DNA of 64,000 bases, taken from sequence record MZ443771.1; one strand, 5' to 3'. The notes under the pieces were generated by a model. That model saw only the letters and a list, made by a program, of their open reading frames with translations. It did no database searches and was not told the DNA's origin. Shown piece by piece: positions 9,957 through 35,104 of the stretch (the stretch's first letter is position 1; every line of letters starts with the position of its first letter). The translations under genes were made by a program, and so were the position numbers.

Positions 9957-10499
9957 ATGACGGAAAAGATTACGCAGTTGGCAAAGTGGTTTGATGCGGC
10001 GAAAGTCGCATTCAAGATGGGGACAGTTAATCCAGACGGTGATGCTGCGTTGCTTCTGGCAATTCACAAACGTCTGATTAAAGAGGTCGAAGATGCTGGT
10101 GATGCAGAAACCAAAGCATTCGCTCAGACAAATCTGTCAGAGTTCATTTCGGATCTGCGCATAGAGCTGCGCATGTTCGACCTGATCTGCAGGCGCTTCA
10201 ACACTGACCTGTACCCTCAGATCAAAATCGGCGATGACGTCAAAATCTATATCGCGCTCATGGCTCAAACGCCGGGCAGTGCTGTAATGGCAATGACGTA
10301 CCTGTATCTTGCTCGCTGCTACACGCTGCAAGACATGATCTTAAACTTCCTCCCGAACGGCTTCCCGGCCTCAGATGCTCTCGGTCTTACGTGGAGCATT
10401 CAGAAAGGGAACAGTGATGCGTTCACCGGAAATCTGGTGGACGATATCGAAACTGTAAATAGCCTGTACAATAAGATGTATAGCTCAGGAGAGAAGTAA
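9957..10499 (+). CDS. hypothetical protein
   Basis: RBS agagga; 180-aa helical ORF. Confidence 0.75.
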   Translation: MTEKITQLAKWFDAAKVAFKMGTVNPDGDAALLLAIHKRLIKEVEDAGDAETKAFAQTNLSEFISDLRIELRMFDLICRRFNTDLYPQIKIGDDVKIYIALMAQTPGSAVMAMTYLYLARCYTLQDMILNFLPNGFPASDALGLTWSIQKGNSDAFTGNLVDDIETVNSLYNKMYSSGEK

Positions 10500-11086
10500 T
10501 GGATTTGTCTGCAATCGGTTACGCTTCGAAACAGTTCCGAGTAATCCCCGTTGAGAAGGGAAATCTCGTGACTGATTTTATTCAAGGTAAGTTCCGCGTT
10601 ATCGGTGTTGAGTGCAATGCCCGTGGTGCTTACGGTAGTCCTATCCAGCAGAGTATCGCACGGCGCTTCCCGGAAGTCATGCGCAAAGTCGAATCAGTTG
10701 ACTACGAGCATGAACTGACTATCGGCAAGACGCATCTTATTCGTGTTGGTACTCAACACCGCCGCAATCTGTTTGTTGCTAACATGCACATTGCTCGCGG
10801 TTTCGGTCTGGGCCTCAATCGTACTATGTCCGAAGGCCCAATCAACCGTTTCAGTGAGCAGCACCTGACGCGAGCGTTTGAACATCTGATTGAACAGTGT
10901 GATAAAGAGAACATCGCACTCGACCGTCAGATCGCTATTCAGCGCTTCTATGGTGGACTCGGCGGAGTTTCGTGGGAAGAAGTATGTGTAGTCCTTGATG
11001 CTATCTGTGAAAAGCACAAGTTCAACATGTACGCGTACCTACCACGTAACTACAATTCTAACTACGTGCGTGGTAGCGCGAACTAA
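10499..11086 (+). CDS. macrodomain (ADP-ribose-binding, Poa1p/DarG-like) protein
   Basis: ECNARGAYGSPIQQSIARRFP and IAIQRFYGGLGGVSWEEV match the macrodomain N..G.MG.GIA..FP and PRIGCGLGGL.W motifs, with deviations. Confidence 0.7.
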   Translation: MDLSAIGYASKQFRVIPVEKGNLVTDFIQGKFRVIGVECNARGAYGSPIQQSIARRFPEVMRKVESVDYEHELTIGKTHLIRVGTQHRRNLFVANMHIARGFGLGLNRTMSEGPINRFSEQHLTRAFEHLIEQCDKENIALDRQIAIQRFYGGLGGVSWEEVCVVLDAICEKHKFNMYAYLPRNYNSNYVRGSAN

Positions 11087-11098
11087 CTCTGGGGTGTA

Positions 11099-11443
11099 TT
11101 GATGAATACAATACGCGGATTTGATTGGCTCTTTTACGGAGATGGAACCGATAGCGGCCAACACTCAATTTTAAGTATCGTCGTTGAACAAGCGGCGAAA
11201 TCAATACAGGTGGAAGTAGAACAAGGAAGTGCCGTGCCTGTAATTCAAGCGATTCAGGAAAACGAAGTCCTGTACGCGCAGACGGACGAAGGGCTTTATC
11301 GCGTTCGTTACAGTTGTTCATTCCGTGGTCTTGACCCGAACTTCTTCCCGCAAGACAAAACGACATTCCGTTTGAAGCTCATCTCGTTTGAGTTTCTTCC
11401 GGGAGTTACTACGCACGATAAGCTGTTGGAGTACGTGCCATGA
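11099..11443 (+). CDS. hypothetical protein
   Basis: ORF in the + strand gene chain; overlaps the next start. Confidence 0.65.
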   Translation: MMNTIRGFDWLFYGDGTDSGQHSILSIVVEQAAKSIQVEVEQGSAVPVIQAIQENEVLYAQTDEGLYRVRYSCSFRGLDPNFFPQDKTTFRLKLISFEFLPGVTTHDKLLEYVP

Positions 11444-12201
11444 TTACTGTGCAGAAAATTGAAGCCCGTTTAAAAAGACTGGACTATACTCGCCCCTCAC
11501 CTAGTCGTGAGATGCTTGAGGGACTTATGAAAGATGGACGCACTCGCATTCTTAGCAAATCAGCTTCGAGTGACCTGTGCAAAGACTCGATGGAATACTT
11601 CGAGTTCTGCCTTTCGCAAGTCGGCTCTTTCTGTACTGCGTCGTACAATGCTGTGGAGATTGGTCTGTCTCTCAACATTCAACCGATTTATATCGCTGCT
11701 GCTATTCACCTGTACGGTAGCGATTGGCAGTTCCGTTTCCTTGAGCTTAAACGTTTCGGTCTGCTTGCCCGCGGTGATTACTCTGTGTGGAAGTCTGCTG
11801 ACGCGTGGTTCGGCCTGGGTGAATGCCGTCGTCGCTTAGTACGTGCTGGGGTAACGAACGAAATCTCCAGCGGTCAGTCTGAGCTTCGCATGGCAGTACG
11901 CAAAGGTGAGCTGGACAAGATTCGTGAGATTGCCAAGAAGTTTCCGCATCGCATGATGTCCATTCTCGACGTGAAGCGTGACCCACTGTATAACGATCCT
12001 CGTATTGCGGCATCACGTAAAGCGCGTGAGAAAGCAAAGGCAGAAGCTGCTGCTGCCGGTAAGAAGCTGGCTGAACCTCGTTCGTACTCTGACCTGAGCG
12101 CTGTGTTCAACGGAGCAATCGCGCCTCGTAATACTGATCGTGGGTTTAGCGATTCGTCAGAAACTCGCGGTACGGTGAACGGTCGTCGTTTTCGTGTCTG
12201 A
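11440..12201 (+). CDS. hypothetical protein
   Basis: 253-aa ORF with a basic C-terminus. Confidence 0.75.
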   Translation: MITVQKIEARLKRLDYTRPSPSREMLEGLMKDGRTRILSKSASSDLCKDSMEYFEFCLSQVGSFCTASYNAVEIGLSLNIQPIYIAAAIHLYGSDWQFRFLELKRFGLLARGDYSVWKSADAWFGLGECRRRLVRAGVTNEISSGQSELRMAVRKGELDKIREIAKKFPHRMMSILDVKRDPLYNDPRIAASRKAREKAKAEAAAAGKKLAEPRSYSDLSAVFNGAIAPRNTDRGFSDSSETRGTVNGRRFRV

Positions 12202-12251
12202 TAACTGCGAACGGTAATTTCTGCTGTCAAAACAAATAACGGAAACCTCCA

Positions 12252-13022
12252 ATGAGCAACATTGATAATACAATGCCTGAGGGCAAGTGGGAGTTCAACG
12301 AGCCTGTTGCTGCTGTGTTCGATAACATGCTGCAAAACTCAATCCCGTCGTATGGCCGTATGCGCGACTTGACCTATCGTCTGGGTCGTCAGTTCGTCAC
12401 GCCCGGTACTGCTATCGTTGACCTCGGAGCTTCTCTGGGTCGTGCTGTTGAGCCGTTCTGCAAAGAGTTCGGCGAGTACATCTACGTTCACGCTGCTGAC
12501 CGTCCTGAGCCAGATCGTGAAATCGGTAACATGTACTGCTGCTACGAAGTCGCTCCTGCGATGCTTGAACGCCTGCGTGAAAACGAAGTGCTGAAAGCGG
12601 CCAAAGCGAAAATCAGTAGCGAATCGCTGGTGGACGTTGACACGTTCCGCTTCGACGAACAGGTTGAGTGCTCGCTCATTCTGTCTGTACTCACTCTCCA
12701 GTTCACGCCGATTGAACATCGTCAACACGTCCTTGAGAAAGTCTATGACTCTCTTGCAAAAGGCGGTGCGTTCATTCTCGTTGAGAAGGTTCTCGGTGAC
12801 GACAACTTCCTCGACCGTCTGCTGGTGGACACGTACTATCACATGAAAGGCGACAACGGCTACACGCAAGAATCTATTGCATGTAAGCGTAAGTCACTCG
12901 AAGGTATTCTGGTGCCTGTCAAAGCTGCATGGAACGAAGAACTGCTGCGCAAAGCGGGCTTCAACCGTGTAGAATGTTTCTACCGCGATCTCAACTTCGC
13001 CGGATGGATCGCAATTAAGTAA
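12252..13022 (+). CDS. cmoA: carboxy-S-adenosyl-L-methionine synthase (CmoA homolog)
   Basis: Collinear with E. coli CmoA: WEFNEPVAAVFDNM..SIPSY, DLGASLG, TLQF, GGAFILVEK, NGYT..I..KRKSLE (the conserved carboxylate-binding Arg), AGF and NF. Confidence 0.9.
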   Translation: MSNIDNTMPEGKWEFNEPVAAVFDNMLQNSIPSYGRMRDLTYRLGRQFVTPGTAIVDLGASLGRAVEPFCKEFGEYIYVHAADRPEPDREIGNMYCCYEVAPAMLERLRENEVLKAAKAKISSESLVDVDTFRFDEQVECSLILSVLTLQFTPIEHRQHVLEKVYDSLAKGGAFILVEKVLGDDNFLDRLLVDTYYHMKGDNGYTQESIACKRKSLEGILVPVKAAWNEELLRKAGFNRVECFYRDLNFAGWIAIK

Positions 13023-13032
13023 GGGAAGTAGC

Positions 13033-14295
13033 ATGAAAGTAAACGGGCGTATCTTAGCAATCGTACCGCACAAGACTCTGGCTGATCGCACGAAGTCTGG
13101 TGTTGGTGCTTACATCGACGGACTCGAAGCGTATGGCTTCTGCGACTTCACCACTGACGGTGAGAACAGTTCCGTAACCAAGAGCTTGTGGTTTAACTAC
13201 GGTGACACCACGCTGAGTGATGGTTACAAAGTAGGGCACATTCAAAGTGAACTGCTTGCTGCTCTTGAGCGTCATCCGTATCGTGCAATCATTTGCAGCA
13301 CATACGAAGCGATTGAAGCTGCTGTCGGTCTGGGCTTGCCAAAGATTATGCCCGTTTACTATCGTTCGCATAACAGCTTCCTGTTGACGCAAGATCTCAA
13401 TGGTCTCGGTGCTGAGAAGATTCACCGTGCTCTACTGCAAGCTGGCGTAACTGGTCTGCGTGTGTTAGCGAACTGTGATTCAACTGCAAACAATCTGGCA
13501 TCACGTTATCCTGTTGCTGCGTCTGTCGCGTACAACTCGTTCAACGTGCCTGACTACAATCCACCAGCAAAGCGCAAGCCGACGCTGTTGATTATCTGTC
13601 GCTACGAAAAGGTTAAGCGCCCTGCGTTTGCTGCTCGTATCGCTGCTGCATCTGGTCTGCCTGTTCGTGTGATGACGGGCAGTGATCGCCAAGTTAAAAG
13701 CTGGCAGAAAGAATTGACCGATGCTGGTGTCAAAGACCATACAGTCGTTAGCGGTATCAGCGGCAAAGAGAAACTTGAGTTCATCGGTGCTTGTACCGTG
13801 GCTCTCTCCTGCGCTGAAATCGAATCGTTCGCTAACGGTGTGCGTGAGTCTATCCCGTACTGCCCAACGTTCATCGTGCAAACATCGAAGTTCGACTGGG
13901 CGAAAGATTACACACGCTTCTGCTCTCTGGACAAACACATCCACGTTCGCACCGTCGACCGTGTGACAGAGCAGGAAGTCACTGAGCTGGGTAATGAGAT
14001 TGCTTACTGGGCTACTACTCGCTACCTGAACAATGCTCAACGTAAAGACTTGATGACCAAGTGGGTTGCTCAAGTCGATAAAGGCTGGGCTGACTTTATG
14101 AAGAATGCCGTTGTTGCTGATGACGGTAAGCCTATGAAAACTGACCTGTCGAAAGAACTCGAACAAAAAGGCGTAGTAGACTGGTCAGAAGTACCTGCGC
14201 TTATGCGTACTGTAAAAGCATTACACAAATGCCATGCTCGTATGGGCCTGACATTCGATGGCACCAAAATCAAAACTAAAGGAAGAAAGAAATGA
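13033..14295 (+). CDS. GT-B fold glycosyltransferase (GT4-like)
   Basis: N-terminal SGVGAYI, C-domain LIICRYEKVKRP (GR...K) and ESFANGVRES (E.FG...EA). Confidence 0.75.
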   Translation: MKVNGRILAIVPHKTLADRTKSGVGAYIDGLEAYGFCDFTTDGENSSVTKSLWFNYGDTTLSDGYKVGHIQSELLAALERHPYRAIICSTYEAIEAAVGLGLPKIMPVYYRSHNSFLLTQDLNGLGAEKIHRALLQAGVTGLRVLANCDSTANNLASRYPVAASVAYNSFNVPDYNPPAKRKPTLLIICRYEKVKRPAFAARIAAASGLPVRVMTGSDRQVKSWQKELTDAGVKDHTVVSGISGKEKLEFIGACTVALSCAEIESFANGVRESIPYCPTFIVQTSKFDWAKDYTRFCSLDKHIHVRTVDRVTEQEVTELGNEIAYWATTRYLNNAQRKDLMTKWVAQVDKGWADFMKNAVVADDGKPMKTDLSKELEQKGVVDWSEVPALMRTVKALHKCHARMGLTFDGTKIKTKGRKK

Positions 14296-15326
14296 GCGTG
14301 ATTGGTGATATCTATAACATTCCTCAACCGTATGCGATGTACTGCGGCAATGCCAAAACCAAAGCAATGGCAAAGATTACTGCCGGTATGGTTGAGTGGG
14401 CTCCTGAGAAGGTATGTTGTGTAGTCGAAGACGCTGAACGTTTGTTCGCTGACGTACCGTGTGTTGAAGTGCGCGATCTCGATAAGACCGACGCTGAAAC
14501 TCTGGTTATCGGCTTTGCGCCATTTGGCGGTCAGATTAACGATGACATTGATCGCGTTGTCTGCGAAGCATTAAAGCGCGGTCTGAACGTTGCTGCTGCT
14601 CTGCACGTCAAACTGGCAGACAATCCTAAATACTTCGCGCTCGCTCGTGAGCACGGTGTATCACTGTATGACTTCCGCCATCACCCTGAGCAATATCCTC
14701 TGGGCACCGGTATTCGTCGTGACGGTATTCGCGTTCTGACTGTTGGCACCGACTGCTCCTGCGGTAAGAAATTCACTGCGCTCGCTCTGACCAAGAAGCT
14801 GACCGAGATGAGTCAGAAAGCTGTGTTCTGTGCTACAGGCCAGACAGGCTTCTTGATTAGCGGTCGTGGCATCAACAACGACACTGTGGTTGCTGACTTC
14901 CTTGCTGGTGCTGCTGAGTGGCTTTCACCTGATGACAAAGACGCAATCTATTTGATTGAAGGTCAAGGCGCTATTCGTCACCCTGCGTATACTGGTGGCA
15001 GCATGAGTCTGATTGCTGGCTCGCAACCTGATGCGCTCGTTATGTGTCACACTGTTGGCCGTAACGTCATGATGGGCACTGAGCGCGAGATCAGTATCAC
15101 GGACGAAATCTCTGCTAACCTTGCAGCGGCTGCGATGCACGACTGGTACCCTCGCGTTGTTGGTATCAGTATCAACTTCTGCGAGTCTGGTATGAGCAAA
15201 GAACAGCGCAAGAAGTATCTGGCGACTATTGAACGTAACATCGGCTACGTAGCGTTCGACCCGCAAGAAGGTGGCGAAGCGTTTGACCGTGTTGCTACTA
15301 CCATAGCGTTGCTGTCGCGCCCATGA
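14292..15326 (+). CDS. DUF1611 / DgcN-family P-loop protein
   Basis: VIGFAPFGG, VGTDCSCGKKFT, ATGQTG, DFLAGAAE, IEGQGAIRHPAY, GSQPDALVMCH. Confidence 0.88.
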   Translation: MSVIGDIYNIPQPYAMYCGNAKTKAMAKITAGMVEWAPEKVCCVVEDAERLFADVPCVEVRDLDKTDAETLVIGFAPFGGQINDDIDRVVCEALKRGLNVAAALHVKLADNPKYFALAREHGVSLYDFRHHPEQYPLGTGIRRDGIRVLTVGTDCSCGKKFTALALTKKLTEMSQKAVFCATGQTGFLISGRGINNDTVVADFLAGAAEWLSPDDKDAIYLIEGQGAIRHPAYTGGSMSLIAGSQPDALVMCHTVGRNVMMGTEREISITDEISANLAAAAMHDWYPRVVGISINFCESGMSKEQRKKYLATIERNIGYVAFDPQEGGEAFDRVATTIALLSRP

Positions 15327-16258
15327 TAGTCCTAATCGACAACGCTGCGTTAGCGAGTAATGCAGCGTATTTAAAATCACTCGCACCGACCATGATTCCC
15401 GTTGTGAAAGGTAATTTCTATGGGCATGGTTTAGATTGCGTGACAGCGTTCGCGTCTGACTTTGACGTGCTTGCAGTGCATAACGTCCAAGAGGCATTGA
15501 CGCTGCGTGAGCTTGGACTTGACCACACGCTGCTGATTCTCGGTGGTACTGACGCGCGTATGTGGAATATAGTTCCTGTATTGAATGCAGCGCAAGCCTC
15601 AACGTATGAAGGCCAGTATGCTGTGTTTGCTGATTGGGGCTGTCGTCGTATCAATGTCAGCCCTGGCCAACTTACCAGTCGCCCAGCTCTCGTTCTCATT
15701 CACTCTGAGGACTACCGTCAGCCTGTGTCTGCGCACACTGCTAACGAGATTGCTGTGCGTTACAACATGCCGCGCTCTCGATTGTCTGTAGGCTCAAGCA
15801 TGAATGCGCTTACACCAGACGCGCCTAAGTTGATGCCGCGTGTTGGTATGGCACTTACCGGTTATAGCAGTGATGAAACTGTTAACGGTAATTTGATCGT
15901 AGCGAAGACAGTGCTTGCTCGCATCTGCGATAAGCTGGATGCGGGTCGAGTATTTGGTTACGGTGCATTAGTGCCTAACAGCGCACACATGTTTCTGTAT
16001 TCGATTGATGTGGGTTATTACGATAACTTATATCAGTCAGAGAACAACACGCCTGTGCATTGCCCTAATGTGCCACACGCTAAGGTCACGTTGCTTACTG
16101 GCGTTGCGCGATCAATCAGCATGAACCATGCCTTCGTATTGTCAGATACTGAGCTACCGTTCGACTCTGAAATTGAATTGCTTGGACCGAACGTTCGCGC
16201 AGATTATCTGGCCAAACTTCACGGAACAACAACTGCGAATATTTTAAGGCTGGGTTAA
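15323..16258 (+). CDS. PLP-dependent alanine-racemase-like protein
   Basis: VVKGNFYGHG (PLP Lys motif VVKANAYGHG), AVHNVQEALTLRELG, PRVGMALTG, FGYG (catalytic Tyr), GYYD and ISMNH. Shorter than a typical Alr. Confidence 0.8.
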   Translation: MIVLIDNAALASNAAYLKSLAPTMIPVVKGNFYGHGLDCVTAFASDFDVLAVHNVQEALTLRELGLDHTLLILGGTDARMWNIVPVLNAAQASTYEGQYAVFADWGCRRINVSPGQLTSRPALVLIHSEDYRQPVSAHTANEIAVRYNMPRSRLSVGSSMNALTPDAPKLMPRVGMALTGYSSDETVNGNLIVAKTVLARICDKLDAGRVFGYGALVPNSAHMFLYSIDVGYYDNLYQSENNTPVHCPNVPHAKVTLLTGVARSISMNHAFVLSDTELPFDSEIELLGPNVRADYLAKLHGTTTANILRLG

Positions 16259-16260
16259 TC

Positions 16261-17130
16261 ATGGCTAAACACGTTTTGCGTAAGCTGTTTGAACAGCACG
16301 TTAAGCAAGAGGTTAAAGCTGACAAAGTTGCGGTGCTGCTGTCAAGCGGCCTTGATGGACTTGTCAGTGCTCTTGCTGCCCACGACTTAGGAAAGAAGGT
16401 ACATGCCTTTACTTTCCAGATGGGTGACAACGAAAGTTTTGACAGCAAACACGCACGTAAAGTAGCAGAGAAGATGGGCTGGGAGTTCACGCTTGTGAAA
16501 GTTCCTACGTCCGACACTGCTATCGCTCAGGGCTGGCGCACACTTCACGCCAAGTATCGCTGTATCAAAAAGCGTGACTACGAGTGTGCTTACCCTATGG
16601 TGTATTGCTACAAGGCAATCAAAGAAGCAGGTTACAAGTACGTTCTCAGCGGCCTTGTTGCTGACGCTTACTTCTGCTTTGCGCGTAATACCCACATCGC
16701 AAAAATCAGCGGCCCGCATAGCGTACTCGAAAAGTTCGACGAGTATCGCAAAGAGTATTGGGCGCCGTGGTTCAAGAACGGTAAGAAGTCTCTCGGCGTT
16801 GACGGCTATAATCCAAGTGGTATGCTGCAACACGAAATGCTGTGCGACACTTTCGGCCTGACTCACGTTAACCCGTGGCTGTTGAAAAAAGTCCATGACT
16901 ACTTCATCGGTCGTTCGTGGCAAGAACTAAATCAACCCAAGCAGAAAATGCCAATAACAGAAGCCTGGGCTGATCACATCGCTGTGGTAGGGCATCGTCC
17001 TCACCGTGGCTATCAAACAGAAGCTGGAGTACCTGCGTACTTCGAACGCTTACTGGATAATCCTGAGATCAACTTCAACGGTCGCAAGCGTGTTATGGAC
17101 CTTGCGCGTGATTGGTCAACGAGGACTTAA
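16261..17130 (+). CDS. asparagine-synthetase-like ATP-dependent amide ligase (synthetase domain only)
   Basis: PP-loop VLLSSGLDG and VLSGLVADAYF (AsnB SGEGADE.F). No N-terminal Cys glutaminase domain. Confidence 0.75.
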   Translation: MAKHVLRKLFEQHVKQEVKADKVAVLLSSGLDGLVSALAAHDLGKKVHAFTFQMGDNESFDSKHARKVAEKMGWEFTLVKVPTSDTAIAQGWRTLHAKYRCIKKRDYECAYPMVYCYKAIKEAGYKYVLSGLVADAYFCFARNTHIAKISGPHSVLEKFDEYRKEYWAPWFKNGKKSLGVDGYNPSGMLQHEMLCDTFGLTHVNPWLLKKVHDYFIGRSWQELNQPKQKMPITEAWADHIAVVGHRPHRGYQTEAGVPAYFERLLDNPEINFNGRKRVMDLARDWSTRT

Positions 17131-17131
17131 T

Positions 17132-17752
17132 ATGTTAGTACACATCATTGACGGAAGCGTAGGCGGTAACTATGTATTCCATAATCTGCAAGAGGCTGGC
17201 ATCAACGCGCGTGTTCATGCTCCTAGTGATCCACGTCGCCGCGCAGTAGCAGCAACCTATCCTTCGCTGTCTATGGGATTTACTCCCGAAGAGATTGAGA
17301 AGCATATCGGTAATGTGCTTGGCACGTATCGCGGTCTGTTCTTGATTAGCAGCTACGTTGGTTCGCTGGTGGCTCGCAACATGATTGACCAGTGTGGTCA
17401 GAGTCATAACATCATCTACTGCGATGATCTCAAGTGCGGGTCTACGCCTGTCGTTGCTTCCTCGATTTCTGTAAATGTCTATCAGAAGCAACGACAACTC
17501 GGACGCATTGCAGGTCGAATCAAACACTTCGACTTCGACCATGAGTTCATTGTAGCTGACAAGGCTGTGCGTTTTGCAGCAGGGTCAGAATTTGATGAGC
17601 ATGGTGCGCGTGAAGAACTGGACGACACGCCCAAGTTCTTATCGAGTCCGTCAATGATTGTTGCTGCACACAAACTCGGTGTGAAGCGCAACGTGTATCA
17701 CAACTACGCTGGTCTGGTGCAAGAGTTCCTTGAAAAGCGCCAGCAGCAATAA
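17132..17752 (+). CDS. degenerate glutamate/aspartate racemase (MurI)-like protein
   Basis: Start reassigned to ATG 17132 (RBS gagga). HIIDGSVGG resembles GVFDSGVGG, and TPEEIEK resembles KS.EEI. The two catalytic Cys positions appear replaced (LISSY, RIKHF). Confidence 0.45.
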   Translation: MLVHIIDGSVGGNYVFHNLQEAGINARVHAPSDPRRRAVAATYPSLSMGFTPEEIEKHIGNVLGTYRGLFLISSYVGSLVARNMIDQCGQSHNIIYCDDLKCGSTPVVASSISVNVYQKQRQLGRIAGRIKHFDFDHEFIVADKAVRFAAGSEFDEHGAREELDDTPKFLSSPSMIVAAHKLGVKRNVYHNYAGLVQEFLEKRQQQ

Positions 17753-20352: not shown

Positions 20353-20754
20353 ATGAGACCCGAGACCATCGCACGAACGTATAGAGTCCCAAGCCAGACT
20401 TTGGAGACAGTTCACAATATCTGCGAACGCCAAGGCGTAAGATTATCTGACATTGTTCGACGCTATGCCCAATTCGTCGTGCGTACTCGCGGTGAGTTTC
20501 TGCGTTCGGCTCCTCGGCCAGAATCGTCCCAGCTCAACGTGCGTATGCCTTTTGATTTAGCACATTCGTTTAGTCTTGTGTGCAAACAATCTGGCTCTGG
20601 TACCAACACAACTGTGACCAGTTTCCTGAATGAGATCGTTCAACTCAATCGTATTCCTGAGGAACTTCTGCAAGAGTCGGCAGAAGATGTGCGTGAGTAT
20701 ATCCGCAAAGAACGTGCTCGCCTCGATACACTGGAGGCCCAACTCGGAAAATAA
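20353..20754 (+). CDS. tandem ribbon-helix-helix DNA-binding protein
   Basis: Two RHH-like units: RTYRVPSQTLETV...LSDIVRRY and QLNVRMPFDL. ATG 20353 follows aagga. Confidence 0.6.
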   Translation: MRPETIARTYRVPSQTLETVHNICERQGVRLSDIVRRYAQFVVRTRGEFLRSAPRPESSQLNVRMPFDLAHSFSLVCKQSGSGTNTTVTSFLNEIVQLNRIPEELLQESAEDVREYIRKERARLDTLEAQLGK

Positions 20755-20755
20755 A

Positions 20756-21598
20756 ATGACAGTAATCAGCCCCATTCGTTATCAGGGCAATAAGCGTAGC
20801 CTTATCCCTCTTATTCTTGAAAACACACCTGATGTGAAAGACTGCCCGCGTATGGTCGATGTGTTTGGCGGTAGTGCCACCGTGTGCGCGAACATGCCTC
20901 AGAAGTTTCGCGTCTACAACGAGCTTAGTCCTCAGGTGTATGAGATCGTTAAGATGCTTGTCGAGCAAGACCCGAAGAAAACATTGGGTCAAGTCAAGCG
21001 TCTGGTAAAGCACTGGTGCCTGACAAACAGCAACGAAGCGAACTATGACGCGTTTCGAACTGTCGTCCAGAAGAAGCGTACTCCCATACTTCACTACGTT
21101 GCGCACAGACACGCACACTCGAACATGCTGCGCTTTAACCAGCAGGGTGTGTACAACGTAGGCTTCGGCGATCGTGGTCTGATTGGAAAGTTCGAGGAGC
21201 TTGAGCATGAGCTTACGACATTCCACCAGCACATGCAGGGTGTTCACCTGACGAACATGAAGTACGGTAAGTTGTTGGGTAGATTAGGCAATCAACTGGA
21301 TTGCAATACGTTCTGCTACTTCGACCCACCGTATCTGGCAAGTGGCGCGATGCAGTACGGCAAGTGGACTGAATCAAACGAACGTAACCTGCTTGCTACG
21401 CTTGAACAACTCAATCGCTTAGGCGTACCGTGGATGTTGAGCAACGTTACAGAGCACAGGCATTTCTCGAACGACCTGTTAAAGCGTTGGCTAAAGAAAC
21501 ACGCGACGACCGTGCTCTACCCGAACAAAAGCTATGCGATGAACAACGGCCAGAGTGGCTCGCATGGTACTGTTGAAATTCTGGCAATGAACTACTGA
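20756..21598 (+). CDS. dam: Dam-like (D12 class) N6-adenine DNA methyltransferase
   Basis: SPIRYQGNK, DVFGGSATV and DPPY. Start reassigned to ATG 20756. Confidence 0.88.
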   Translation: MTVISPIRYQGNKRSLIPLILENTPDVKDCPRMVDVFGGSATVCANMPQKFRVYNELSPQVYEIVKMLVEQDPKKTLGQVKRLVKHWCLTNSNEANYDAFRTVVQKKRTPILHYVAHRHAHSNMLRFNQQGVYNVGFGDRGLIGKFEELEHELTTFHQHMQGVHLTNMKYGKLLGRLGNQLDCNTFCYFDPPYLASGAMQYGKWTESNERNLLATLEQLNRLGVPWMLSNVTEHRHFSNDLLKRWLKKHATTVLYPNKSYAMNNGQSGSHGTVEILAMNY

Positions 21599-28849: not shown

Positions 28850-29187
28850 CTACACCAGTAATTCGCTTTGACGAACAGACACGTCAACTGCTGGCAAAGA
28901 TCTTCGGCATACATAAGCCGTTCTTTGTTGTGCGTCGTGATACGATCATCTCAGGTGGTGACTTGGGCTTTCGTGTGTATCTGTCGAATGGCACCAACAC
29001 TGTTACCGTTCCTCGCGTTAAAGGCCTTGACTTGGGCGACAAGCTCTATCTTGGTGATGACGAGGAAGTTTATGAGTGGCATCCTCATATAGGCTGCACG
29101 TATATGGCCATTGGCGATAATCAGCCAGAAGCACTCGCATTTGGTCTTCATCCAATCGTTTTTCACAAAGACAGTCGGAACTCTTAA
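28846..29187 (+). CDS. hypothetical protein
   Basis: ATGA overlap with the previous gene. Confidence 0.65.
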   Translation: MTTPVIRFDEQTRQLLAKIFGIHKPFFVVRRDTIISGGDLGFRVYLSNGTNTVTVPRVKGLDLGDKLYLGDDEEVYEWHPHIGCTYMAIGDNQPEALAFGLHPIVFHKDSRNS

Positions 29188-30290
29188 TGGCAAAGCAAAC
29201 TCTTGATCTACGCGATCCTAATCAGTACGAACTCTATTCCCTGCATTGTGTTGACGAGCAATACATCAATCTGGGCAACGCTATCATCTCTCAGGGTACT
29301 GATGAGTCAGACCCAGGCCGTACAGAAGATACGTGGCGCACCATTATCGGCTGTGGCTTCCAGTTGTCAAACACGCTGATCGCTTTCCCTGCGTTAGTCA
29401 GTGCTCGTAAGAACTGGCTGGCAGCAGTCGATGAGATGTGCTGGATGTCTCGCGGCGAAACGAATATCAGCTCGCTCAATTCCAAAATCTGGAATGAGTG
29501 GGCAGATGAAGACGGCGAGTGCGGCCCTATCTACGGTCTGATGTGGCGCATGTGGCCTGATATCAAAACGTTCCCGACTATTGAGTCGATGAAAGAGCGT
29601 CAGATCAGCGATGCAGAAATCGAGCGCATCTCGAAAGAGATCAATCGCATGAAAGCTGCCGGGTACACTGAAACGCAAATGGCTGACGGTCGTGTGTGCT
29701 ACGAAGGTACAGTTGACCAGTTCGCTGATGCGCTGCGTCAGGTAATGGCCCGCAGTCGTTCTCGTCGTATTCGCGTTCAGGCGTACAACCCGTCCTATCT
29801 GCACATGCAGGGTCTGCCTCCGTGCCACACCGAGTTCGAGTTCAACGTAACCAAGCCGACGCTGTATGAAATCGCTCAGATGGAAGCGCGTCAAATGGCA
29901 CCGGCCGAAGATTCGTTGCACATCGTTGTGACCATGAGATCGAACGATGTGCTCTTGGGCAGGCCATTTAACATCATCGGCTACAGCGCCATGCACCAGA
30001 TGATTGCCAAGTGGGCTGGCTTGAACGTCGGTAGCTTTACGCTCAACACTACCAACACGCACCTGTACACGCATCACTTTGAAGCGTTTGAAAAGCAGCG
30101 TGAGCAGTGGGCAGTTCTCGCAGACAACATGAAGCGCACTGGCGAACCTGTTGTCTATCCTATGCTGGAAATCAGCGACGACATTCTCGGTCTGACGCCG
30201 GAAGAGTTGCTGGACAACGCGAACGCAGAGTGGTTCCAGCTTCTCGATTACGCACCATCACCAGCGGTCAAAGGACGTGTGACGAAATGA
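29187..30290 (+). CDS. thyA: thymidylate synthase (ThyA type)
   Basis: EMCWMSRG, IWNEWA, GPIYG..WR, SRRI, LPPCH, RSND..LGRPFN (Asn, dUMP-specific) and HLY. Confidence 0.93.
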   Translation: MAKQTLDLRDPNQYELYSLHCVDEQYINLGNAIISQGTDESDPGRTEDTWRTIIGCGFQLSNTLIAFPALVSARKNWLAAVDEMCWMSRGETNISSLNSKIWNEWADEDGECGPIYGLMWRMWPDIKTFPTIESMKERQISDAEIERISKEINRMKAAGYTETQMADGRVCYEGTVDQFADALRQVMARSRSRRIRVQAYNPSYLHMQGLPPCHTEFEFNVTKPTLYEIAQMEARQMAPAEDSLHIVVTMRSNDVLLGRPFNIIGYSAMHQMIAKWAGLNVGSFTLNTTNTHLYTHHFEAFEKQREQWAVLADNMKRTGEPVVYPMLEISDDILGLTPEELLDNANAEWFQLLDYAPSPAVKGRVTK

Positions 30291-31848: not shown

Positions 31849-31884
31849 GTCTCCTGTCAGTAATTTAACTTTCTAACAGGAGAC
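31849..31884 (+). promoter_or_regulatory. RBS-sequestering hairpin with motif B (GTAATTTA) in its loop
   Basis: GTCTCCTGT (31849-31857) pairs perfectly with ACAGGAGAC (31876-31884), which contains the SD of ATG 31890. Confidence 0.7.
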
Positions 31885-31889
31885 TTGCC

Positions 31890-32225
31890 ATGAAATACGA
31901 TCCGAAGAAAGACTACAAACCATTTCAGTATCTGGGTGCGCCTAAAGCTCCAACGAGCGGGTACTTAGGCAGTACAGTGTATGTCGTAGAGAACGATGTT
32001 AACATCGGAAGTGATGAATGCGAGTTCGTATTCACTGTAGCTCAGATGAATGAGATGGATAGAGGTACTGTTACGTTCCGTGCTAAAGACTCGGGCGGAG
32101 GTATCACGATAAAGAAATGCTCGGTCTCAGGTCTGAAAATGGTAATTAAGCTGGACAGACGCGTCATACAGTTTGGCAAAGTTCAGGTCGAATGGCAGAC
32201 AACGCCCCGACATTATTACTACTGA
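31890..32225 (+). CDS. hypothetical protein, probably late-expressed
   Basis: SD aggag lies inside the hairpin. Confidence 0.7.
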   Translation: MKYDPKKDYKPFQYLGAPKAPTSGYLGSTVYVVENDVNIGSDECEFVFTVAQMNEMDRGTVTFRAKDSGGGITIKKCSVSGLKMVIKLDRRVIQFGKVQVEWQTTPRHYYY

Positions 32226-32268: not shown

Positions 32269-32973
32269 ATGGCAAAAACTGCTACCAAAACAAAGGACGG
32301 AAAAAAGAAAGGCGAGTTGAAGTTTGATCTGAAAAAACTCAATTCAGTCTCTCAGCTCAAGGGCGCAGAGTACAACCCGCGCTTCATTACTGACAGTCGC
32401 TTGAAAGCTCTCGAAGGTTCTCTCGGGAGTTTCGGTGATCTGTCTGGTATCGTGTTCAACAACAACATCAAGTCTGGTGTGTTGATCTCAGGCCACCAGC
32501 GTCTGAAATCAATCGACGGTTGGAAAACTCGCATCGAGATTCAGCCGACGACTGACAAGCACGGTACTATCGGTCTGGGCTACATTCATGCAACGCATCC
32601 GAAGAAAGCTGATCGTGTTATCAGCATTCCTCTGCGTGTCGTGAACTGGACTGATAAGAAAGCTGAGTACGCAGCGAACATCGCAGCGAACGCCCACGGC
32701 GGTGAGTTCGATAACAAGAAGCTCGCCAAGCTGGTTGAGAAACTCGATCTGAATACGATCAAGCCTCAGCTGCTGGGTCTCGACCCGCTTGAGATTCGTG
32801 GTCTGCAAGCCAAGATCAAGATTCAGGCGAACGTCGAAGATACGAAACGTGCTGGCAAGACTACTGGCCAGATGAACGGCAGCACCGGTAAGTTTAATGA
32901 GTACAACCCTGATGATGTGGGTGACACTCTGAACTGCACCTGCCCGCGTTGTGGATTTAAGTTCGAGGGATAA
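32269..32973 (+). CDS. ParB/Srx-like N-terminal domain protein with a C-terminal Zn ribbon
   Basis: YNPRFI...LEGSL..FG.L..IV, LISGHQRL, and C-terminal CTCPRCGFKF. Confidence 0.75.
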   Translation: MAKTATKTKDGKKKGELKFDLKKLNSVSQLKGAEYNPRFITDSRLKALEGSLGSFGDLSGIVFNNNIKSGVLISGHQRLKSIDGWKTRIEIQPTTDKHGTIGLGYIHATHPKKADRVISIPLRVVNWTDKKAEYAANIAANAHGGEFDNKKLAKLVEKLDLNTIKPQLLGLDPLEIRGLQAKIKIQANVEDTKRAGKTTGQMNGSTGKFNEYNPDDVGDTLNCTCPRCGFKFEG

Positions 32974-32974
32974 T

Positions 32975-35104
32975 ATGATCATCAAGCCGCCAACCATGAA
33001 GGAAATCAACAAGCTGGCTAAACCCTGGCGTGGTATGAGTTTCTTCGCAGGTTGCGGTGGGTCTTCGACCGGTCACAAGATGGCCGGTATCGACATTCTG
33101 TTGAGCAACGAGTTTATTGACTCTGCGCGTGAGTCGTATGAAGCAAACCACCCGACAACCAAAGTGCTGCCTCATGATATCCGTCGCTTAGACCCAAGCA
33201 AGCTGTTGCGCTACTGCGGTCTTGCTAAGGGTGAGCTGGATTTGCTTGATGGTAGTCCTCCGTGCTTTACCGAAGACACAATCATCCACACTGCTGACGG
33301 CATGAAGTTCATTTCTGATATGCACGTCAACGATCTGGCAATGACGAGCGTTGGTGAATACTTTCCTGTGTACGACACTATGGTTCGTCCGTATGTCGGT
33401 ACGATGCACAAGATTGAAACGATGCTCGGTAGCAACAAAGCAACGCCAGAGCACCCGTTCTTTGTTCGTCGCTCTCAGGCAGACGGTAGCTACTCTGAGC
33501 CGTTCTGGTGTGATGCGAAAGACGTGCAAGAAGGTGACTTGCTCGGTACGCCGCGCACTACCCCTGACATGGGGATTGACGTGTATCAGGCTCAGATTGA
33601 TCAGTTGCCTAAGTTAGTAGCGGACTGGGTGACTTACCCTGAGTTCTGGTGGATGATTGGTCACTGGTGTGATCGTGGCACAATCGAAACAGTTAACGGT
33701 GTTGACGTCATCTGCTTCGAGTCGCACTCAAGCCTTGAGAACGCGATGATCGAGCAGGCGTTTGATGCGCTTAAAATCAGTAGCCTGAATCGTATCGACA
33801 CGACAACGGCGCAGCGCAAAACATTCCGCACTGTTATCGAAGCAGAGCTGGTGCAGTTCCTGCGTCGATTCGTCAGTCAGGAGCAGAACAAGTTTTCTCG
33901 TCGTCTGCCTGCAATCGTGTTCCATTTGTCAAACGAGTTGAAGCAACAATTCATTCTCGGTTGTGCGGGGCATGACTACGTGACTGCTATGGGCACAAGC
34001 CTTGCTATCACATCTGATAGTCGCCGCTTCCTGATTGAGCTGAACTACCTGTGTGCGTCTGCTTTCAATCGTCCGCTGTTTGACGGTCTTATCTGGGCAG
34101 ACGTTAACTTCGGTAGTGCGTTAACGCCGCGTGAGCGTAACAGTTCACGAGCGCATATCGGCTTCCTGTTCCTGCAGGATGAAGCGCTGTTCATGCACGA
34201 GTTCTCCGATGAAGACCCGCATCTCTGGGTTGAAGTGATTGAGAACCTCGCGTATCAGGCGACCTGTGACGTGTATAACTTCTCTGTGCAGACAGACGAG
34301 ACATACGTTGCAAATAGCATGGTCGTTCACAACTGCAAAGGCTTCTCTACTGCTGGTGTGAAAGAAGAAGGCTGGGGCAAAGAAGTTAAATACAGCGACA
34401 ACAAGTATCAGCAGGTTGATGACCTGTTCGATCAGTATTGCCGTATGCTTCAAGGCATGGAGCCAAAAGTGTTCACTGCGGAAAACGTCAGCGGCCTAAT
34501 CAAGGGTACCTCTAAAGGGTACTTTGTCGAAATCATGAAGCACTTCGACAGATTAGGTTATTATGTTCGTGCTCCGATGCTGAATGCTTGCTGGCTTGGC
34601 GTACCGCAGTCGCGTGAACGTATCATCTTCATGGGTGTGCGCAAAGACGTTGCCCATGCTCTCGGCTATAAGTCTGCTCAGACCGCTGTGCCTGATGTTA
34701 TCCCGTGCGAGACGCAAGCGTTTCTCGGTGATGCGTTGCCGCACATCATGCGATACAAAACAACGCAGCGTGACCTGATCAAATATCTGCCTGCCGTTAA
34801 CGGTCCGATGCCTACGATTACTGCTGCTGATGCGATTGCGTATGAGACTGCGCGATTCTCGTCTGCTGGCTTTATCGAAGACAACAAAGGTCATCGGCGT
34901 AAGCTGACCATCGACGAACTCAAAGTTATCTCTGGACTGCCGTCTGACTATAAGCTGATGGGTGAGTTTGAAGAACAATGGGAACGTCTTGGTCGTATCT
35001 GTGTGCCAGCAATGACACACGCTGCATCTAAGGCTTTCATCGAGCACATTCTTCTGCCGTATGCGAAGAAGCGTAAGAAGAAGCCCGGCGATATCTTTAA
35101 GTAA
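32975..35104 (+). CDS. DNA cytosine-C5 methyltransferase-fold enzyme, predicted carboxymethyltransferase; intein-containing
   Basis: Motif I FFAGCGG, IV GSPP|C-KGFS, VI ENV, VIII PQSRER, IX RKLTIDE. Motif X reads LGRICVP (Arg at 34994-34996 in place of Asn). Start ATG 32975; 352 aa after splicing. Confidence 0.85.
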   Translation: MIIKPPTMKEINKLAKPWRGMSFFAGCGGSSTGHKMAGIDILLSNEFIDSARESYEANHPTTKVLPHDIRRLDPSKLLRYCGLAKGELDLLDGSPPCFTEDTIIHTADGMKFISDMHVNDLAMTSVGEYFPVYDTMVRPYVGTMHKIETMLGSNKATPEHPFFVRRSQADGSYSEPFWCDAKDVQEGDLLGTPRTTPDMGIDVYQAQIDQLPKLVADWVTYPEFWWMIGHWCDRGTIETVNGVDVICFESHSSLENAMIEQAFDALKISSLNRIDTTTAQRKTFRTVIEAELVQFLRRFVSQEQNKFSRRLPAIVFHLSNELKQQFILGCAGHDYVTAMGTSLAITSDSRRFLIELNYLCASAFNRPLFDGLIWADVNFGSALTPRERNSSRAHIGFLFLQDEALFMHEFSDEDPHLWVEVIENLAYQATCDVYNFSVQTDETYVANSMVVHNCKGFSTAGVKEEGWGKEVKYSDNKYQQVDDLFDQYCRMLQGMEPKVFTAENVSGLIKGTSKGYFVEIMKHFDRLGYYVRAPMLNACWLGVPQSRERIIFMGVRKDVAHALGYKSAQTAVPDVIPCETQAFLGDALPHIMRYKTTQRDLIKYLPAVNGPMPTITAADAIAYETARFSSAGFIEDNKGHRRKLTIDELKVISGLPSDYKLMGEFEEQWERLGRICVPAMTHAASKAFIEHILLPYAKKRKKKPGDIFK
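33263..34333 (+). mobile_element. intein (357 aa) with a degenerate LAGLIDADG-type domain, inserted just before the catalytic Cys
   Basis: Starts CFTEDTIIHTADG, has block B ATPEHPF, block F DVYNFSVQTDETY and ends VHN followed by Cys+1. Endonuclease-like blocks WWMIGHWCDRG and QFILGCAGHD are degraded. Confidence 0.92.

Follow-up and report, generated by a model that had tools for sequence, protein, structure and literature searches.

Does the operon at positions 12252-17752 of the DNA studied here encode a single pathway of DNA hypermodification, and do the genes that accompany its recognizable cytosine-carboxymethylation enzymes take part in it? The 64,000-nucleotide stretch in question (hereafter 'the window') is 100% identical to, and has the same coordinates as, the first 64 kb of Erwinia phage pEa_SNUABM_20 (MZ443771.1), a jumbo phage of the genus Alexandravirus with a genome of 265,871 bp, whose host Erwinia amylovora is the fire-blight bacterium. 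An initial annotation of the window had proposed that cytosine is converted to 5-carboxymethylcytosine (5cxmC), amidated with a D-amino acid and then further acylated or glycosylated. Our analysis suggests that the genes for a glycosyltransferase (GT), a DUF1611 protein and an alanine racemase (Alr)-like enzyme probably do belong to the same pathway as the carboxymethylation ('Cmo') core, an assignment that we base on conserved linkage and co-occurrence and not on chemistry. The six open reading frames (ORFs) claimed for the + strand are all present:

12252-13022, + strand: homolog of CmoA (carboxy-SAM synthase), 256 aa; matches to TIGR00740, phrog_4752, 4gek and SpCmoA
13033-14295, + strand: GT-B/GT4-type glycosyltransferase (ORF2), 420 aa, an optional module; predicted from fold and motifs
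14292-15326, + strand: DUF1611 protein, relative of the DgcN family (D-glutamate N-acetyltransferase), 344 aa; PF07755, PF17396, NF041892
15323-16258, + strand: alanine-racemase-family enzyme of the pyridoxal phosphate (PLP) type, 311 aa, an optional module; PF01168 1.8e-14
16261-17130, + strand: CmoY-type AMP-forming amide ligase of the DUF1611-linked subtype, 289 aa; AsnB synthetase domain only
17132-17752, + strand: ORF6, 206 aa, partner of the ligase in this clade only; its fold may be that of a degenerate Asp/Glu racemase

Recurrence of a DUF1611-ligase module

The reference for the core is the system of Synechococcus phage S-B43, in which CmoA produces carboxy-S-adenosylmethionine (carboxy-SAM, Cx-SAM), the cytosine C5-methyltransferase (C5-MTase) homolog CmoX yields 5cxmC, and the AsnB-type ligase CmoY attaches glycine (PMC12783734). 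The initial annotation had mentioned a cyanophage route of this kind; it is the one described by Yang and co-workers (Nat Commun 2025, PMC12783734), and homologs of its three enzymes are encoded here. In the same study ParBc proteins are frequent neighbours of Cmo genes, and different amines are predicted for the remaining ligase clusters, with 'alternative amine substrates' left open (PMC12783734).

Within the jumbo-phage clade to which the window belongs, at least six architectures are encountered in one syntenic slot:

cmoA, ligase, ORF6: SNUABM_30, SNUABM_2 and SNUABM_5
cmoA, ligase, 2-oxoglutarate (2OG) oxygenase, ORF6: Erwinia phage Y3
cmoA, DUF1611, ligase, ORF6: Alexandra and AD1
cmoA, GT, DUF1611, ligase: SNUABM_7 (Snuvirus)
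all six genes: the window and 7 other phages
a different middle section: Yersinia phage fHe-Yen9-02

Related modules are found on metagenomic phage contigs that are unrelated to this clade (loci numbered from L011 to L033):

L030: ParB-like, CmoX, CmoA, GT, DUF1611, Alr, ligase (contiguous)
L031: CmoX, DUF1611, Alr, ligase, CmoA
L014/L015: CmoX, GT, DUF1611, ligase, CmoA
L011/L013: CmoA, GT, DUF1611, Alr, ligase, DAHP synthase
L028: DUF1611, Alr, ligase
L029: GT, DUF1611, ligase, GNAT
L032: DUF1611, ligase

DUF1611 lies upstream of one ligase subtype, either directly or with only Alr interposed, in the window clade as well as in L011/L013, L014-L016 and L028-L033, a pairing that spans about nine phage lineages. 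The gene order [GT]-DUF1611-[Alr]-ligase is constant, GT and the Alr-like gene being independently optional, and in four metagenomic loci the module adjoins CmoX and/or CmoA. It is this conserved order, together with the co-occurrence in unrelated phages, which lends strong support to the proposal that the Cmo pathway is extended by GT, DUF1611 and the racemase-like gene. Among 50,697 phage records DUF1611 was found only in the window clade, and a scan of IMG/VR with the DUF1611 alignment, which used narrow search patterns and is no evidence of absence, likewise returned the same jumbo-phage clade only.

The ligases themselves bear the mark of this pairing. In a phylogenetic tree the DUF1611-linked ligases form one clade (support 97/94), sister to SpCmoY, and they have a subtype-specific insertion of about 10 residues, KNGKKSLGVDGYNPSG, together with the motif GHRPHRGYQTEA. 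When the window ligase (16261-17130) is compared with those of L011, L015 and L028-L032, the DUF1611-linked ligases turn out to be 59-77% identical across lineages, where CmoA reaches 41-56%, DUF1611 40-58% and GT 25-47%; in sister phages devoid of DUF1611, by contrast, the ligase is only 25-33% identical although CmoA is 74-91% identical. Such conservation suggests either unusually strong constraint or a recent horizontal spread of the DUF1611-ligase pair.

One may nevertheless ask whether only the published core acts on DNA, with GT, DUF1611, the Alr-like enzyme and ORF6 merely sharing a variable slot while serving other ends, be it host pools of D-amino acids and peptidoglycan precursors or small-molecule synthesis. 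The slot is indeed a hotspot, accommodating unrelated enzymes (such as the 2OG oxygenase of Y3) among its architectures, DgcN is a small-molecule enzyme, and three of the loci listed above (L028, L029 and L032) are without CmoA or CmoX within 9 kb on either side, which is the extent visible. However, GT and DUF1611 are located between CmoX and ligase/CmoA in L014/L015 and L030, as are DUF1611 and Alr in L031, and DUF1611 tracks a specific ligase subtype in about nine lineages while being absent from all other phage records. We thus regard it as unlikely that the accessory genes are mere lodgers, and retain the reading in which they extend the Cmo pathway.

Two further enzymes were encountered at these positions. 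The 2OG-Fe(II) oxygenase of Erwinia phage Y3 is encoded between ligase and ORF6 (L006 4271-4909), and a 302-residue GNAT acetyltransferase follows the ligase in L029 (L029:10192-11100). The presence of an oxygenase and a GNAT enzyme in the cluster suggests that further variants of the adduct may exist.

The core enzymes and the intein of CmoX

The assignment of the first gene as cmoA is borne out by a full-length match to TIGR00740 (2.8e-41), by matches to E. coli CmoA (4gek; 1.3e-29) and phrog_4752 (1.3e-79), and by 31% identity to the characterised SpCmoA. The ligase proved equally true to its description as a glutaminase-less AsnB-like enzyme: PF00733 (6.9e-16) covers a synthetase domain only, and the protein aligns with SpCmoY over its full length (34% identity, 3e-54). 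On two metagenomic contigs the ligase is directly followed by a gene for 3-deoxy-D-arabino-heptulosonate 7-phosphate (DAHP) synthase (L011:14162-15025 and L013:4509-5372; TIGR00034, 180.2 bits versus a cutoff of 173.2). The prephenate demand of CmoA was raised in the S-B43 study (PMC12783734), and a phage DAHP synthase, which would raise shikimate-pathway flux to prephenate, fits this demand for the co-substrate.

The third core enzyme is encoded elsewhere in the window:

32269-32973, + strand: ParB-like protein directly upstream of CmoX; ParB-like by RefSeq annotation
32975-35104, + strand: CmoX precursor (cytosine C5-carboxymethyltransferase homolog), 709 aa; PF00145 6.1e-38; interrupted by an intein
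33263-34333, + strand: class-1 intein, 357 aa; PF14890 3e-9; at the motif IV catalytic Cys (GSPP/C...TPEH...VVHN/C, slashes marking the junctions)

The distal C5-MTase with an Arg in motif X, as described in the initial annotation, is therefore real and located 15.2 kb downstream of the operon, but its intein had gone unmentioned. In the precursor the junctions read ...LLDGSPP/C FTEDT...ATPEHPF...MVVHN/C KGFSTAG..., and the features of a class-1 intein are found throughout (Cys1, the block B TxxH, the C-terminal His-Asn and a Cys at +1), so that the motif IV catalytic Cys of CmoX doubles as the +1 nucleophile of the intein. When the exteins are joined in silico, they read GSPPCKGFS and ERLGRICVP: SPPC is restored, and ERLGR aligns on the ERVGR of SpCmoX, whose Arg350 occupies the position of the motif X Asn and is indispensable (PMC12783734). 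Provided that the intein splices, the window protein would thus possess both the SPPC and the Arg typical of the Cmo system. The spliced extein matches SpCmoX (PDB 8yf3) with 1e-58 in phmmer and M.HaeIII with 8.9e-19; identity to SpCmoX is 35% (tblastn).

The intein is in frame in all clade members, and the corresponding split pattern of CmoX matches is seen in every listed Erwinia, Dickeya and Yersinia member of the clade, Pseudomonas phage PaBG being without it. L014 contains a second intein at the same CmoX site (L014:7783-10011; 23% identical to that of the window), while its near-identical sibling L016 (L016:1712-2737) is intein-free and, with its empty site GSPPCSAFS, provides a natural control. 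No homing-endonuclease domain was recognised in the CmoX intein with Pfam and a search of the PDB. The activity of the modification enzyme would then hinge on protein splicing. The ParB-like neighbour matches the N-terminal region of the PADLOC model MTase_II (3.8e-9), and homologs with 41-46% identity precede CmoX in L014, L016, L030 and L031.

The number of CmoA records equals that of CmoX records in each genus (Erwinia 48/48, Dickeya 2/2, Yersinia 1/1, Pseudomonas 2/2, Synechococcus 6/6). The initial annotation had named as contrary evidence the occurrence of the operon in relatives devoid of the Arg-motif transferase, and it is a genus-by-genus match of the two genes that was found. Of the 57 records with a conserved flanking gene, six, from syntenic Dickeya JA phages, have neither CmoA nor CmoX; in Dickeya phage JA11 (L035 7917-9088) the slot, bounded by the primase gene and the homolog of window 11440-12201, is empty. 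JA11-type phages, with an empty slot and no CmoX, are natural negative controls, and Table 5 of the AD1 paper is consistent with the joint loss of CmoA and CmoX.

These data also bear on a reading in which no DNA is carboxymethylated at all, CmoA serving to boost the cmo5U modification of host tRNA and the C5-MTase being either ordinary or inactivated by its intein. RefSeq labels CmoA a 'tRNA methyltransferase', its score falls under the equivalog cutoff, and the MTase gene is interrupted. Against this, the exchange of the motif X Asn for Arg, which is required for the use of Cx-SAM, is present, for the extein, the match to CmoX is better than that to M.HaeIII by 40 orders of magnitude, the intein has its C1, TxxH and HN/C motifs intact and is in frame in all clade members, and CmoA and CmoX are gained or lost jointly. 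We consider a purely tRNA-directed role to be highly improbable, and proceed from carboxymethylation of DNA cytosine.

Compared with the S-B43 system, the window has all three enzymes, SPPC and the equivalent of Arg350, and a ParB-like neighbour; in either case the ligase is an AsnB synthetase domain of about 290 residues without glutaminase, and the route predicted for the window, like that of S-B43, leads from a carboxyl handle to an amide. The window differs in that its CmoX has an intein at the catalytic Cys and is encoded 15 kb from the operon, in that its ligase falls into a separate clade which is always paired with DUF1611, and in that it additionally encodes a GT4 glycosyltransferase, ORF6 and an enzyme of the Alr family.

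The accessory proteins

The DUF1611 gene had been named correctly (PF07755 2.5e-51 and PF17396 2.1e-17, both domains being present), but its closest characterised relative, DgcN, had been passed over. The protein matches the NCBIfam DgcN model NF041892 with 1.4e-91 and 306.9 bits, below the equivalog cutoff of 480, and PDB entry 7xrj, a generically named deposit that we take to be DgcN, with 4.8e-62; bacterial DgcN proteins are 40-45% identical to it by the thousands. The phage clade retains 58/114 positions conserved in DgcN, including the P-loop and the TGQTG, EGQG, HP, QPD and CH motifs, and departs from DgcN by five systematic switches, which include R->C180 and D->Y220 beside two conserved motifs. 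Because its score remains below the cutoff (306.9 < 480 bits) and these two charged residues are exchanged, we file the phage protein as a relative of DgcN and not as DgcN itself. The pattern may point to an intact scaffold with an altered acceptor pocket.

DgcN reportedly acts together with DgcA in the D-glutamate catabolic pathway that Yu and co-workers are said to have described in the ISME J in 2023. Likeness to that pair extends to the full-length arrangement of N- and C-terminal DUF1611 domains with their motifs kept, and to the pairing of an acyltransferase with a racemase. In contrast, the phage protein scores below the cutoff and has the five substitutions, including the loss of Arg and Asp; its partner is a PLP enzyme of the Alr type, whereas DgcA is an N-acetyl-amino-acid racemase of the enolase superfamily; and the context is a DNA-modification cluster instead of catabolism.

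For the Alr-like protein, an alignment with E. coli Alr (hhalign, 98.1% over 302 columns) confirms the family. Its VVK29GNFYGHG aligns with the VKANAYGHG of E. coli, which contains the PLP-binding Lys, and K29, Y33, R109, H127 and R173 are invariant in the Alr-like family. The second catalytic base of alanine racemase is Tyr265 (G. stearothermophilus numbering); Y232 of the window protein aligns with the Tyr of the E. coli MGYGDG, and in the orthologs of L011, L028 and L030 the catalytic-Tyr position is occupied by N, R or E. Racemase activity is hence plausible for the window protein, but it is not secure across the Alr-like family because the Tyr is replaced in these three lineages. Racemases of Lys, Orn and Arg, as well as broad-spectrum ones, belong to the Alr family. 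The proposal that a D-amino acid serves as the amine is accordingly no more than tentative: the Lys/Tyr pair of the window protein speaks for it, whereas the loss of the Tyr elsewhere and the lack of a conserved catalytic Cys in ORF6 speak against it.

ORF2 yielded nothing in scans of Pfam, NCBIfam, PHROGs and PADLOC, with no PF00534 match above threshold; weak PF00534 matches are seen in its homologs only. The label GT4 is nonetheless borne out by structure prediction, since an AlphaFold 2 (AF2) model computed from a 7-sequence alignment (predicted local distance difference test, pLDDT, 79.5; predicted template modelling score, pTM, 0.78) is predicted to adopt a GT-B fold (Foldseek probability 1.0, ~1e-10) and the donor motifs are invariant. 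The model matches GlgM, BshA, MshA, TarM and the GT of phage HY126 as well as viral GT1-family enzymes, including annotated DNA alpha-glucosyltransferases, and an independent model from BFVD agrees with the fold (template modelling score, TM, 0.91). R190-x4-K195 and E264-x7-E272, which correspond to the GT4 donor-binding (R/K donor-phosphate) and EX7E motifs, are invariant in 7 ORF2 homologs down to 35% identity, and R190, K195, E264 and E272 are also kept in a 20%-identical cyanophage homolog. A distant homolog from Synechococcus phage BUCT-ZZ01 (L005 9743-11086; 20-23% identity, R/K and EX7E residues kept), directly follows the 7-deazaguanine genes QueE, QueD and FolE, which represent another DNA-modification context.

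A further candidate source of an acceptor was considered for the GT. The window encodes at 29187-30290 a thymidylate-synthase (TS) homolog of 367 residues, about 100 more than ThyA owing to internal insertions, with the Asn of its PFNI motif kept. Action of the GT on 5-hydroxymethylcytosine (5hmC) or 5-hydroxymethyluracil (5hmU) supplied by this protein is unlikely, because the enzyme, with its dUMP-type PFNI and matches to true TS, looks dUMP-specific and because the GT is linked to Cmo genes elsewhere.

ORF6, whose true start is the ATG at 17132 and not the GTG at 17006, did not live up to its earlier label of a MurI-like protein. It has no match in Pfam, NCBIfam, PHROGs or PADLOC, a profile search of the PDB was also empty, and the family is tiny, with 5 representative clusters among 1.8e9 proteins. 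Its AF2 model (pLDDT 67.6) has MurI 2jfx as the Foldseek match of best TM (0.47), which is not significant (E 0.38), and hhalign against E. coli MurI gives a probability of 1.2% over the N-terminal 18 residues only. A more remote link is provided by a Yersinia-phage protein that aligns with ORF6 (hhalign, 88.5%) and itself weakly matches TIGR00067 (glutamate racemase; 1.7e-6). In that alignment the first MurI Cys (ACNT) falls on a variable ORF6 position and the second on the invariant S172 (SSPS); both catalytic Cys are thus missing, and the family has invariant S74, S78, S91 and S172 but no invariant Cys. ORF6 follows ligases of either type and is limited to this clade, so that we give it no step in the pathway.

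Two proteins of Yersinia phage fHe-Yen9-02 may be mentioned here. A protein of 190 residues, with a weak glutamate racemase match, retains ACNT, has GSTH in place of GCTH and is a remote relative of ORF6. Between cmoA and the ORF6 homolog (L010 5409-6976) a protein of 331 residues with a faint PP-loop (QueC-like) match is encoded, which is possibly a third type of ligase.

A possible pathway

For the first three steps, support comes from in vitro work on homologous enzymes and from the retention of the key residues recognised there (PMC12783734). (i) CmoA would convert SAM and prephenate into Cx-SAM. (ii) The intein would splice out of CmoX, restoring GSPPC, and the enzyme would place a carboxymethyl group on cytosine C5 in DNA, giving 5cxmC. 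(iii) The CmoY-type ligase would adenylate the carboxylate of 5cxmC and form an amide with an amine.

The steps contributed by the accessory genes are described with considerably more reserve. (iv) DUF1611, as a DgcN-like acyl-CoA-dependent N-acyltransferase for D-alpha-amino groups, would prepare or cap the amine, and the Alr-like enzyme and DUF1611 might work as a pair, the former racemising L to D and the latter trapping the D-form by N-acylation, before or after ligation. (v) The GT4 enzyme, where present, would add a sugar to the adduct. DUF1611 has lost a conserved Arg and a conserved Asp, which would suit a substrate with a non-acidic side chain. As for the benefit, phage DNA would be shielded from host nucleases. 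That the accessory steps produce specifically an acylated D-amino-acid adduct and a sugar is a tentative proposal, which we draw from gene linkage and the chemistry of the enzyme families and consider possible rather than probable.

The order implied by 'further acylation or glycosylation' of an amide-linked D-amino acid is tentative and meets with a difficulty that the initial annotation had passed over, since an amino acid linked through its alpha-amine has no amine left for a DgcN-type enzyme. Step (iv) hence demands a substrate with a second amino group or a free D-centre, and the adduct on 5cxmC would be a moiety of the N-acyl-D-amino-acid type. This need for a special substrate class is one of several points that weigh against the pathway as drawn. 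The others are that L028, L029 and L032 lack CmoA and CmoX within the 9 kb visible on either side, that the catalytic Tyr is replaced in part of the Alr-like family, that both CmoA (TIGR00740) and DUF1611 score under their NCBIfam equivalog cutoffs, that the window CmoX is 15 kb away from the operon, that its intein is judged competent to splice from motifs only, and that searches of the literature for unusual DNA in these phages found no report.

The amine problem would disappear if ligase and DUF1611 formed a two-component amide synthase, in which the ligase only adenylates 5cxmC and DUF1611 directs a D-amino acid onto the DNA-borne acyl-adenylate, with the Alr-like enzyme supplying the D-isomer and the GT decorating the product. 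N-acylation would then be the ligation itself, and this arrangement would explain the strict co-inheritance of DUF1611, Alr and ligase, their frequent start/stop overlap and the extreme conservation of the ligase; it would also agree with a DUF1611 whose P-loop is kept while two charged residues of DgcN are lost (R->C180 and D->Y220). However, we know of no member of the DgcN family with an acyl-adenylate donor. As full-length sisters of SpCmoY, the DUF1611-linked ligases give no sign of having lost the second half-reaction, and SpCmoY completes glycine ligation by itself (PMC12783734). Such a division of labour therefore appears improbable to us, and we prefer a ligase that forms the amide on its own.

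Taken at its widest, our reading is that the cytosines of these phages carry a peptidoglycan-like side chain on 5cxmC, namely an amide-linked unit derived from a D-amino acid, N-acylated by an enzyme of the DgcN type that was recruited from the catabolism of D-amino acids and in some phages glycosylated by a GT4 enzyme, and that the mobile two-gene DUF1611-ligase module represents a new branch of hypermodification, possibly with DUF1611 acting on a DNA-borne acyl-adenylate and with each architecture producing an adduct of its own. We put this forward as a speculation, one that may well turn out to be wrong in its particulars.

Relation to known systems and significance

Phages attach amino compounds to thymidine as well, and alpha-glutamylthymidine, alpha-putrescinylthymine and 5-NeOmdU are familiar from the literature of the Weigele laboratory. 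These systems share with the proposed pathway the post-replicative attachment of an amino compound at a pyrimidine C5 substituent and a modular, variable cluster, but differ in the base, in the enzyme families and in the handle, which is a pyrophosphate or phosphate leaving group on 5hmU in the one case and a carboxylate adenylate in the other. Glucosyl-5hmC of T4 and arabinosyl-5-hydroxycytosine of HY126 and RB69 (PMC13326640) likewise involve a phage GT-B enzyme encoded in a base-modification cluster, and ORF2 has the GT of HY126 as one of its best structural matches. There, however, the handle is a hydroxyl group, in contrast to the carboxymethyl amide predicted for the window. In the window there is no hint of an enzyme that would hydroxymethylate or hydroxylate cytosine, and its TS homolog keeps the PFNI Asn.

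The CmoA/CmoX/CmoY core has been known since December 2025, and the novelty of the present locus is confined to its extension. That the racemase, DUF1611 and GT genes were undescribed in this role agrees with what we found: there is no mention of the GT4 enzyme, the Alr-like enzyme, ORF6 or the DUF1611-paired ligase in PMC12783734 or its supplements, nor of the extension in the later literature searched, and no description of a DUF1611-ligase module, of the CmoX intein or of the modular series of Erwinia phages was found there.

The locus and its relatives thus appear to represent a recurrent extension in which a DgcN-family acyltransferase is locked to one ligase subtype, with racemase-family and GT modules as options. 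If this is true, D-amino-acid, acyl and sugar chemistry would be added to the repertoire of DNA base modification, DUF1611 would have a second biological role, and new enzymes for the site-directed functionalisation of DNA might become available. The jumbo phages of Erwinia, Dickeya and Yersinia constitute a natural series, ranging from no system to the core and on to the core with oxygenase, DUF1611, GT or Alr-like gene, which may turn out to be valuable for matching each enzyme to a mass shift without any engineering.

Operon boundaries, upstream element and neighbouring genes

The six genes are as tightly coupled as had been claimed, with junctions of +10, -4, -4, +2 and +1 nt behind a single gap of 50 bp (12202-12251). 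Spacing alone is no guide to the 3' end of the operon, because the tight coupling runs on past 17752 into small conserved ORFs. The comparative data do delimit it: two small ORFs after 17752 are kept in relatives whatever the content of the cluster.

One element stands out in the gap:

12211-12220, + strand: ACGGTAATTT, a conserved element upstream of cmoA, within the gap of 50 bp; candidate promoter or other regulatory site

The GTAATTT motif noted earlier is present at 12214-12220, but this 7-mer is not enriched in itself (6 found versus 5.8 expected), and we rejected it as an enriched promoter word. The 10-mer ACGGTAATTT, when up to one mismatch is allowed, occurs 9 times versus 2.6 expected, and a comparison of 8 phages from 4 genera shows it unchanged at the orthologous position between diverging flanks; upstream of cmoA in these phages, ACGGTAATTT(C) followed by GTCAAAACAAATAACGGAA is conserved. 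Another GTAATTT (31860-31866) precedes, by 23 nt, the ORF at 31890, which heads the ParB-like/CmoX block, so that this block and the cmoA operon may be co-regulated. Two more exact or near copies of the element are found inside the Alr-like gene (15408-15417 and 15885-15894).

Among the neighbouring genes, a macro-domain protein resembling O-acetyl-ADP-ribose deacetylases is encoded upstream of the operon (10499-11086). Downstream, a D12-class adenine methyltransferase (20630-21598; PF02086 6.4e-23) suggests that the DNA of pEa_SNUABM_20 probably also carries N6-methyladenine (m6A).

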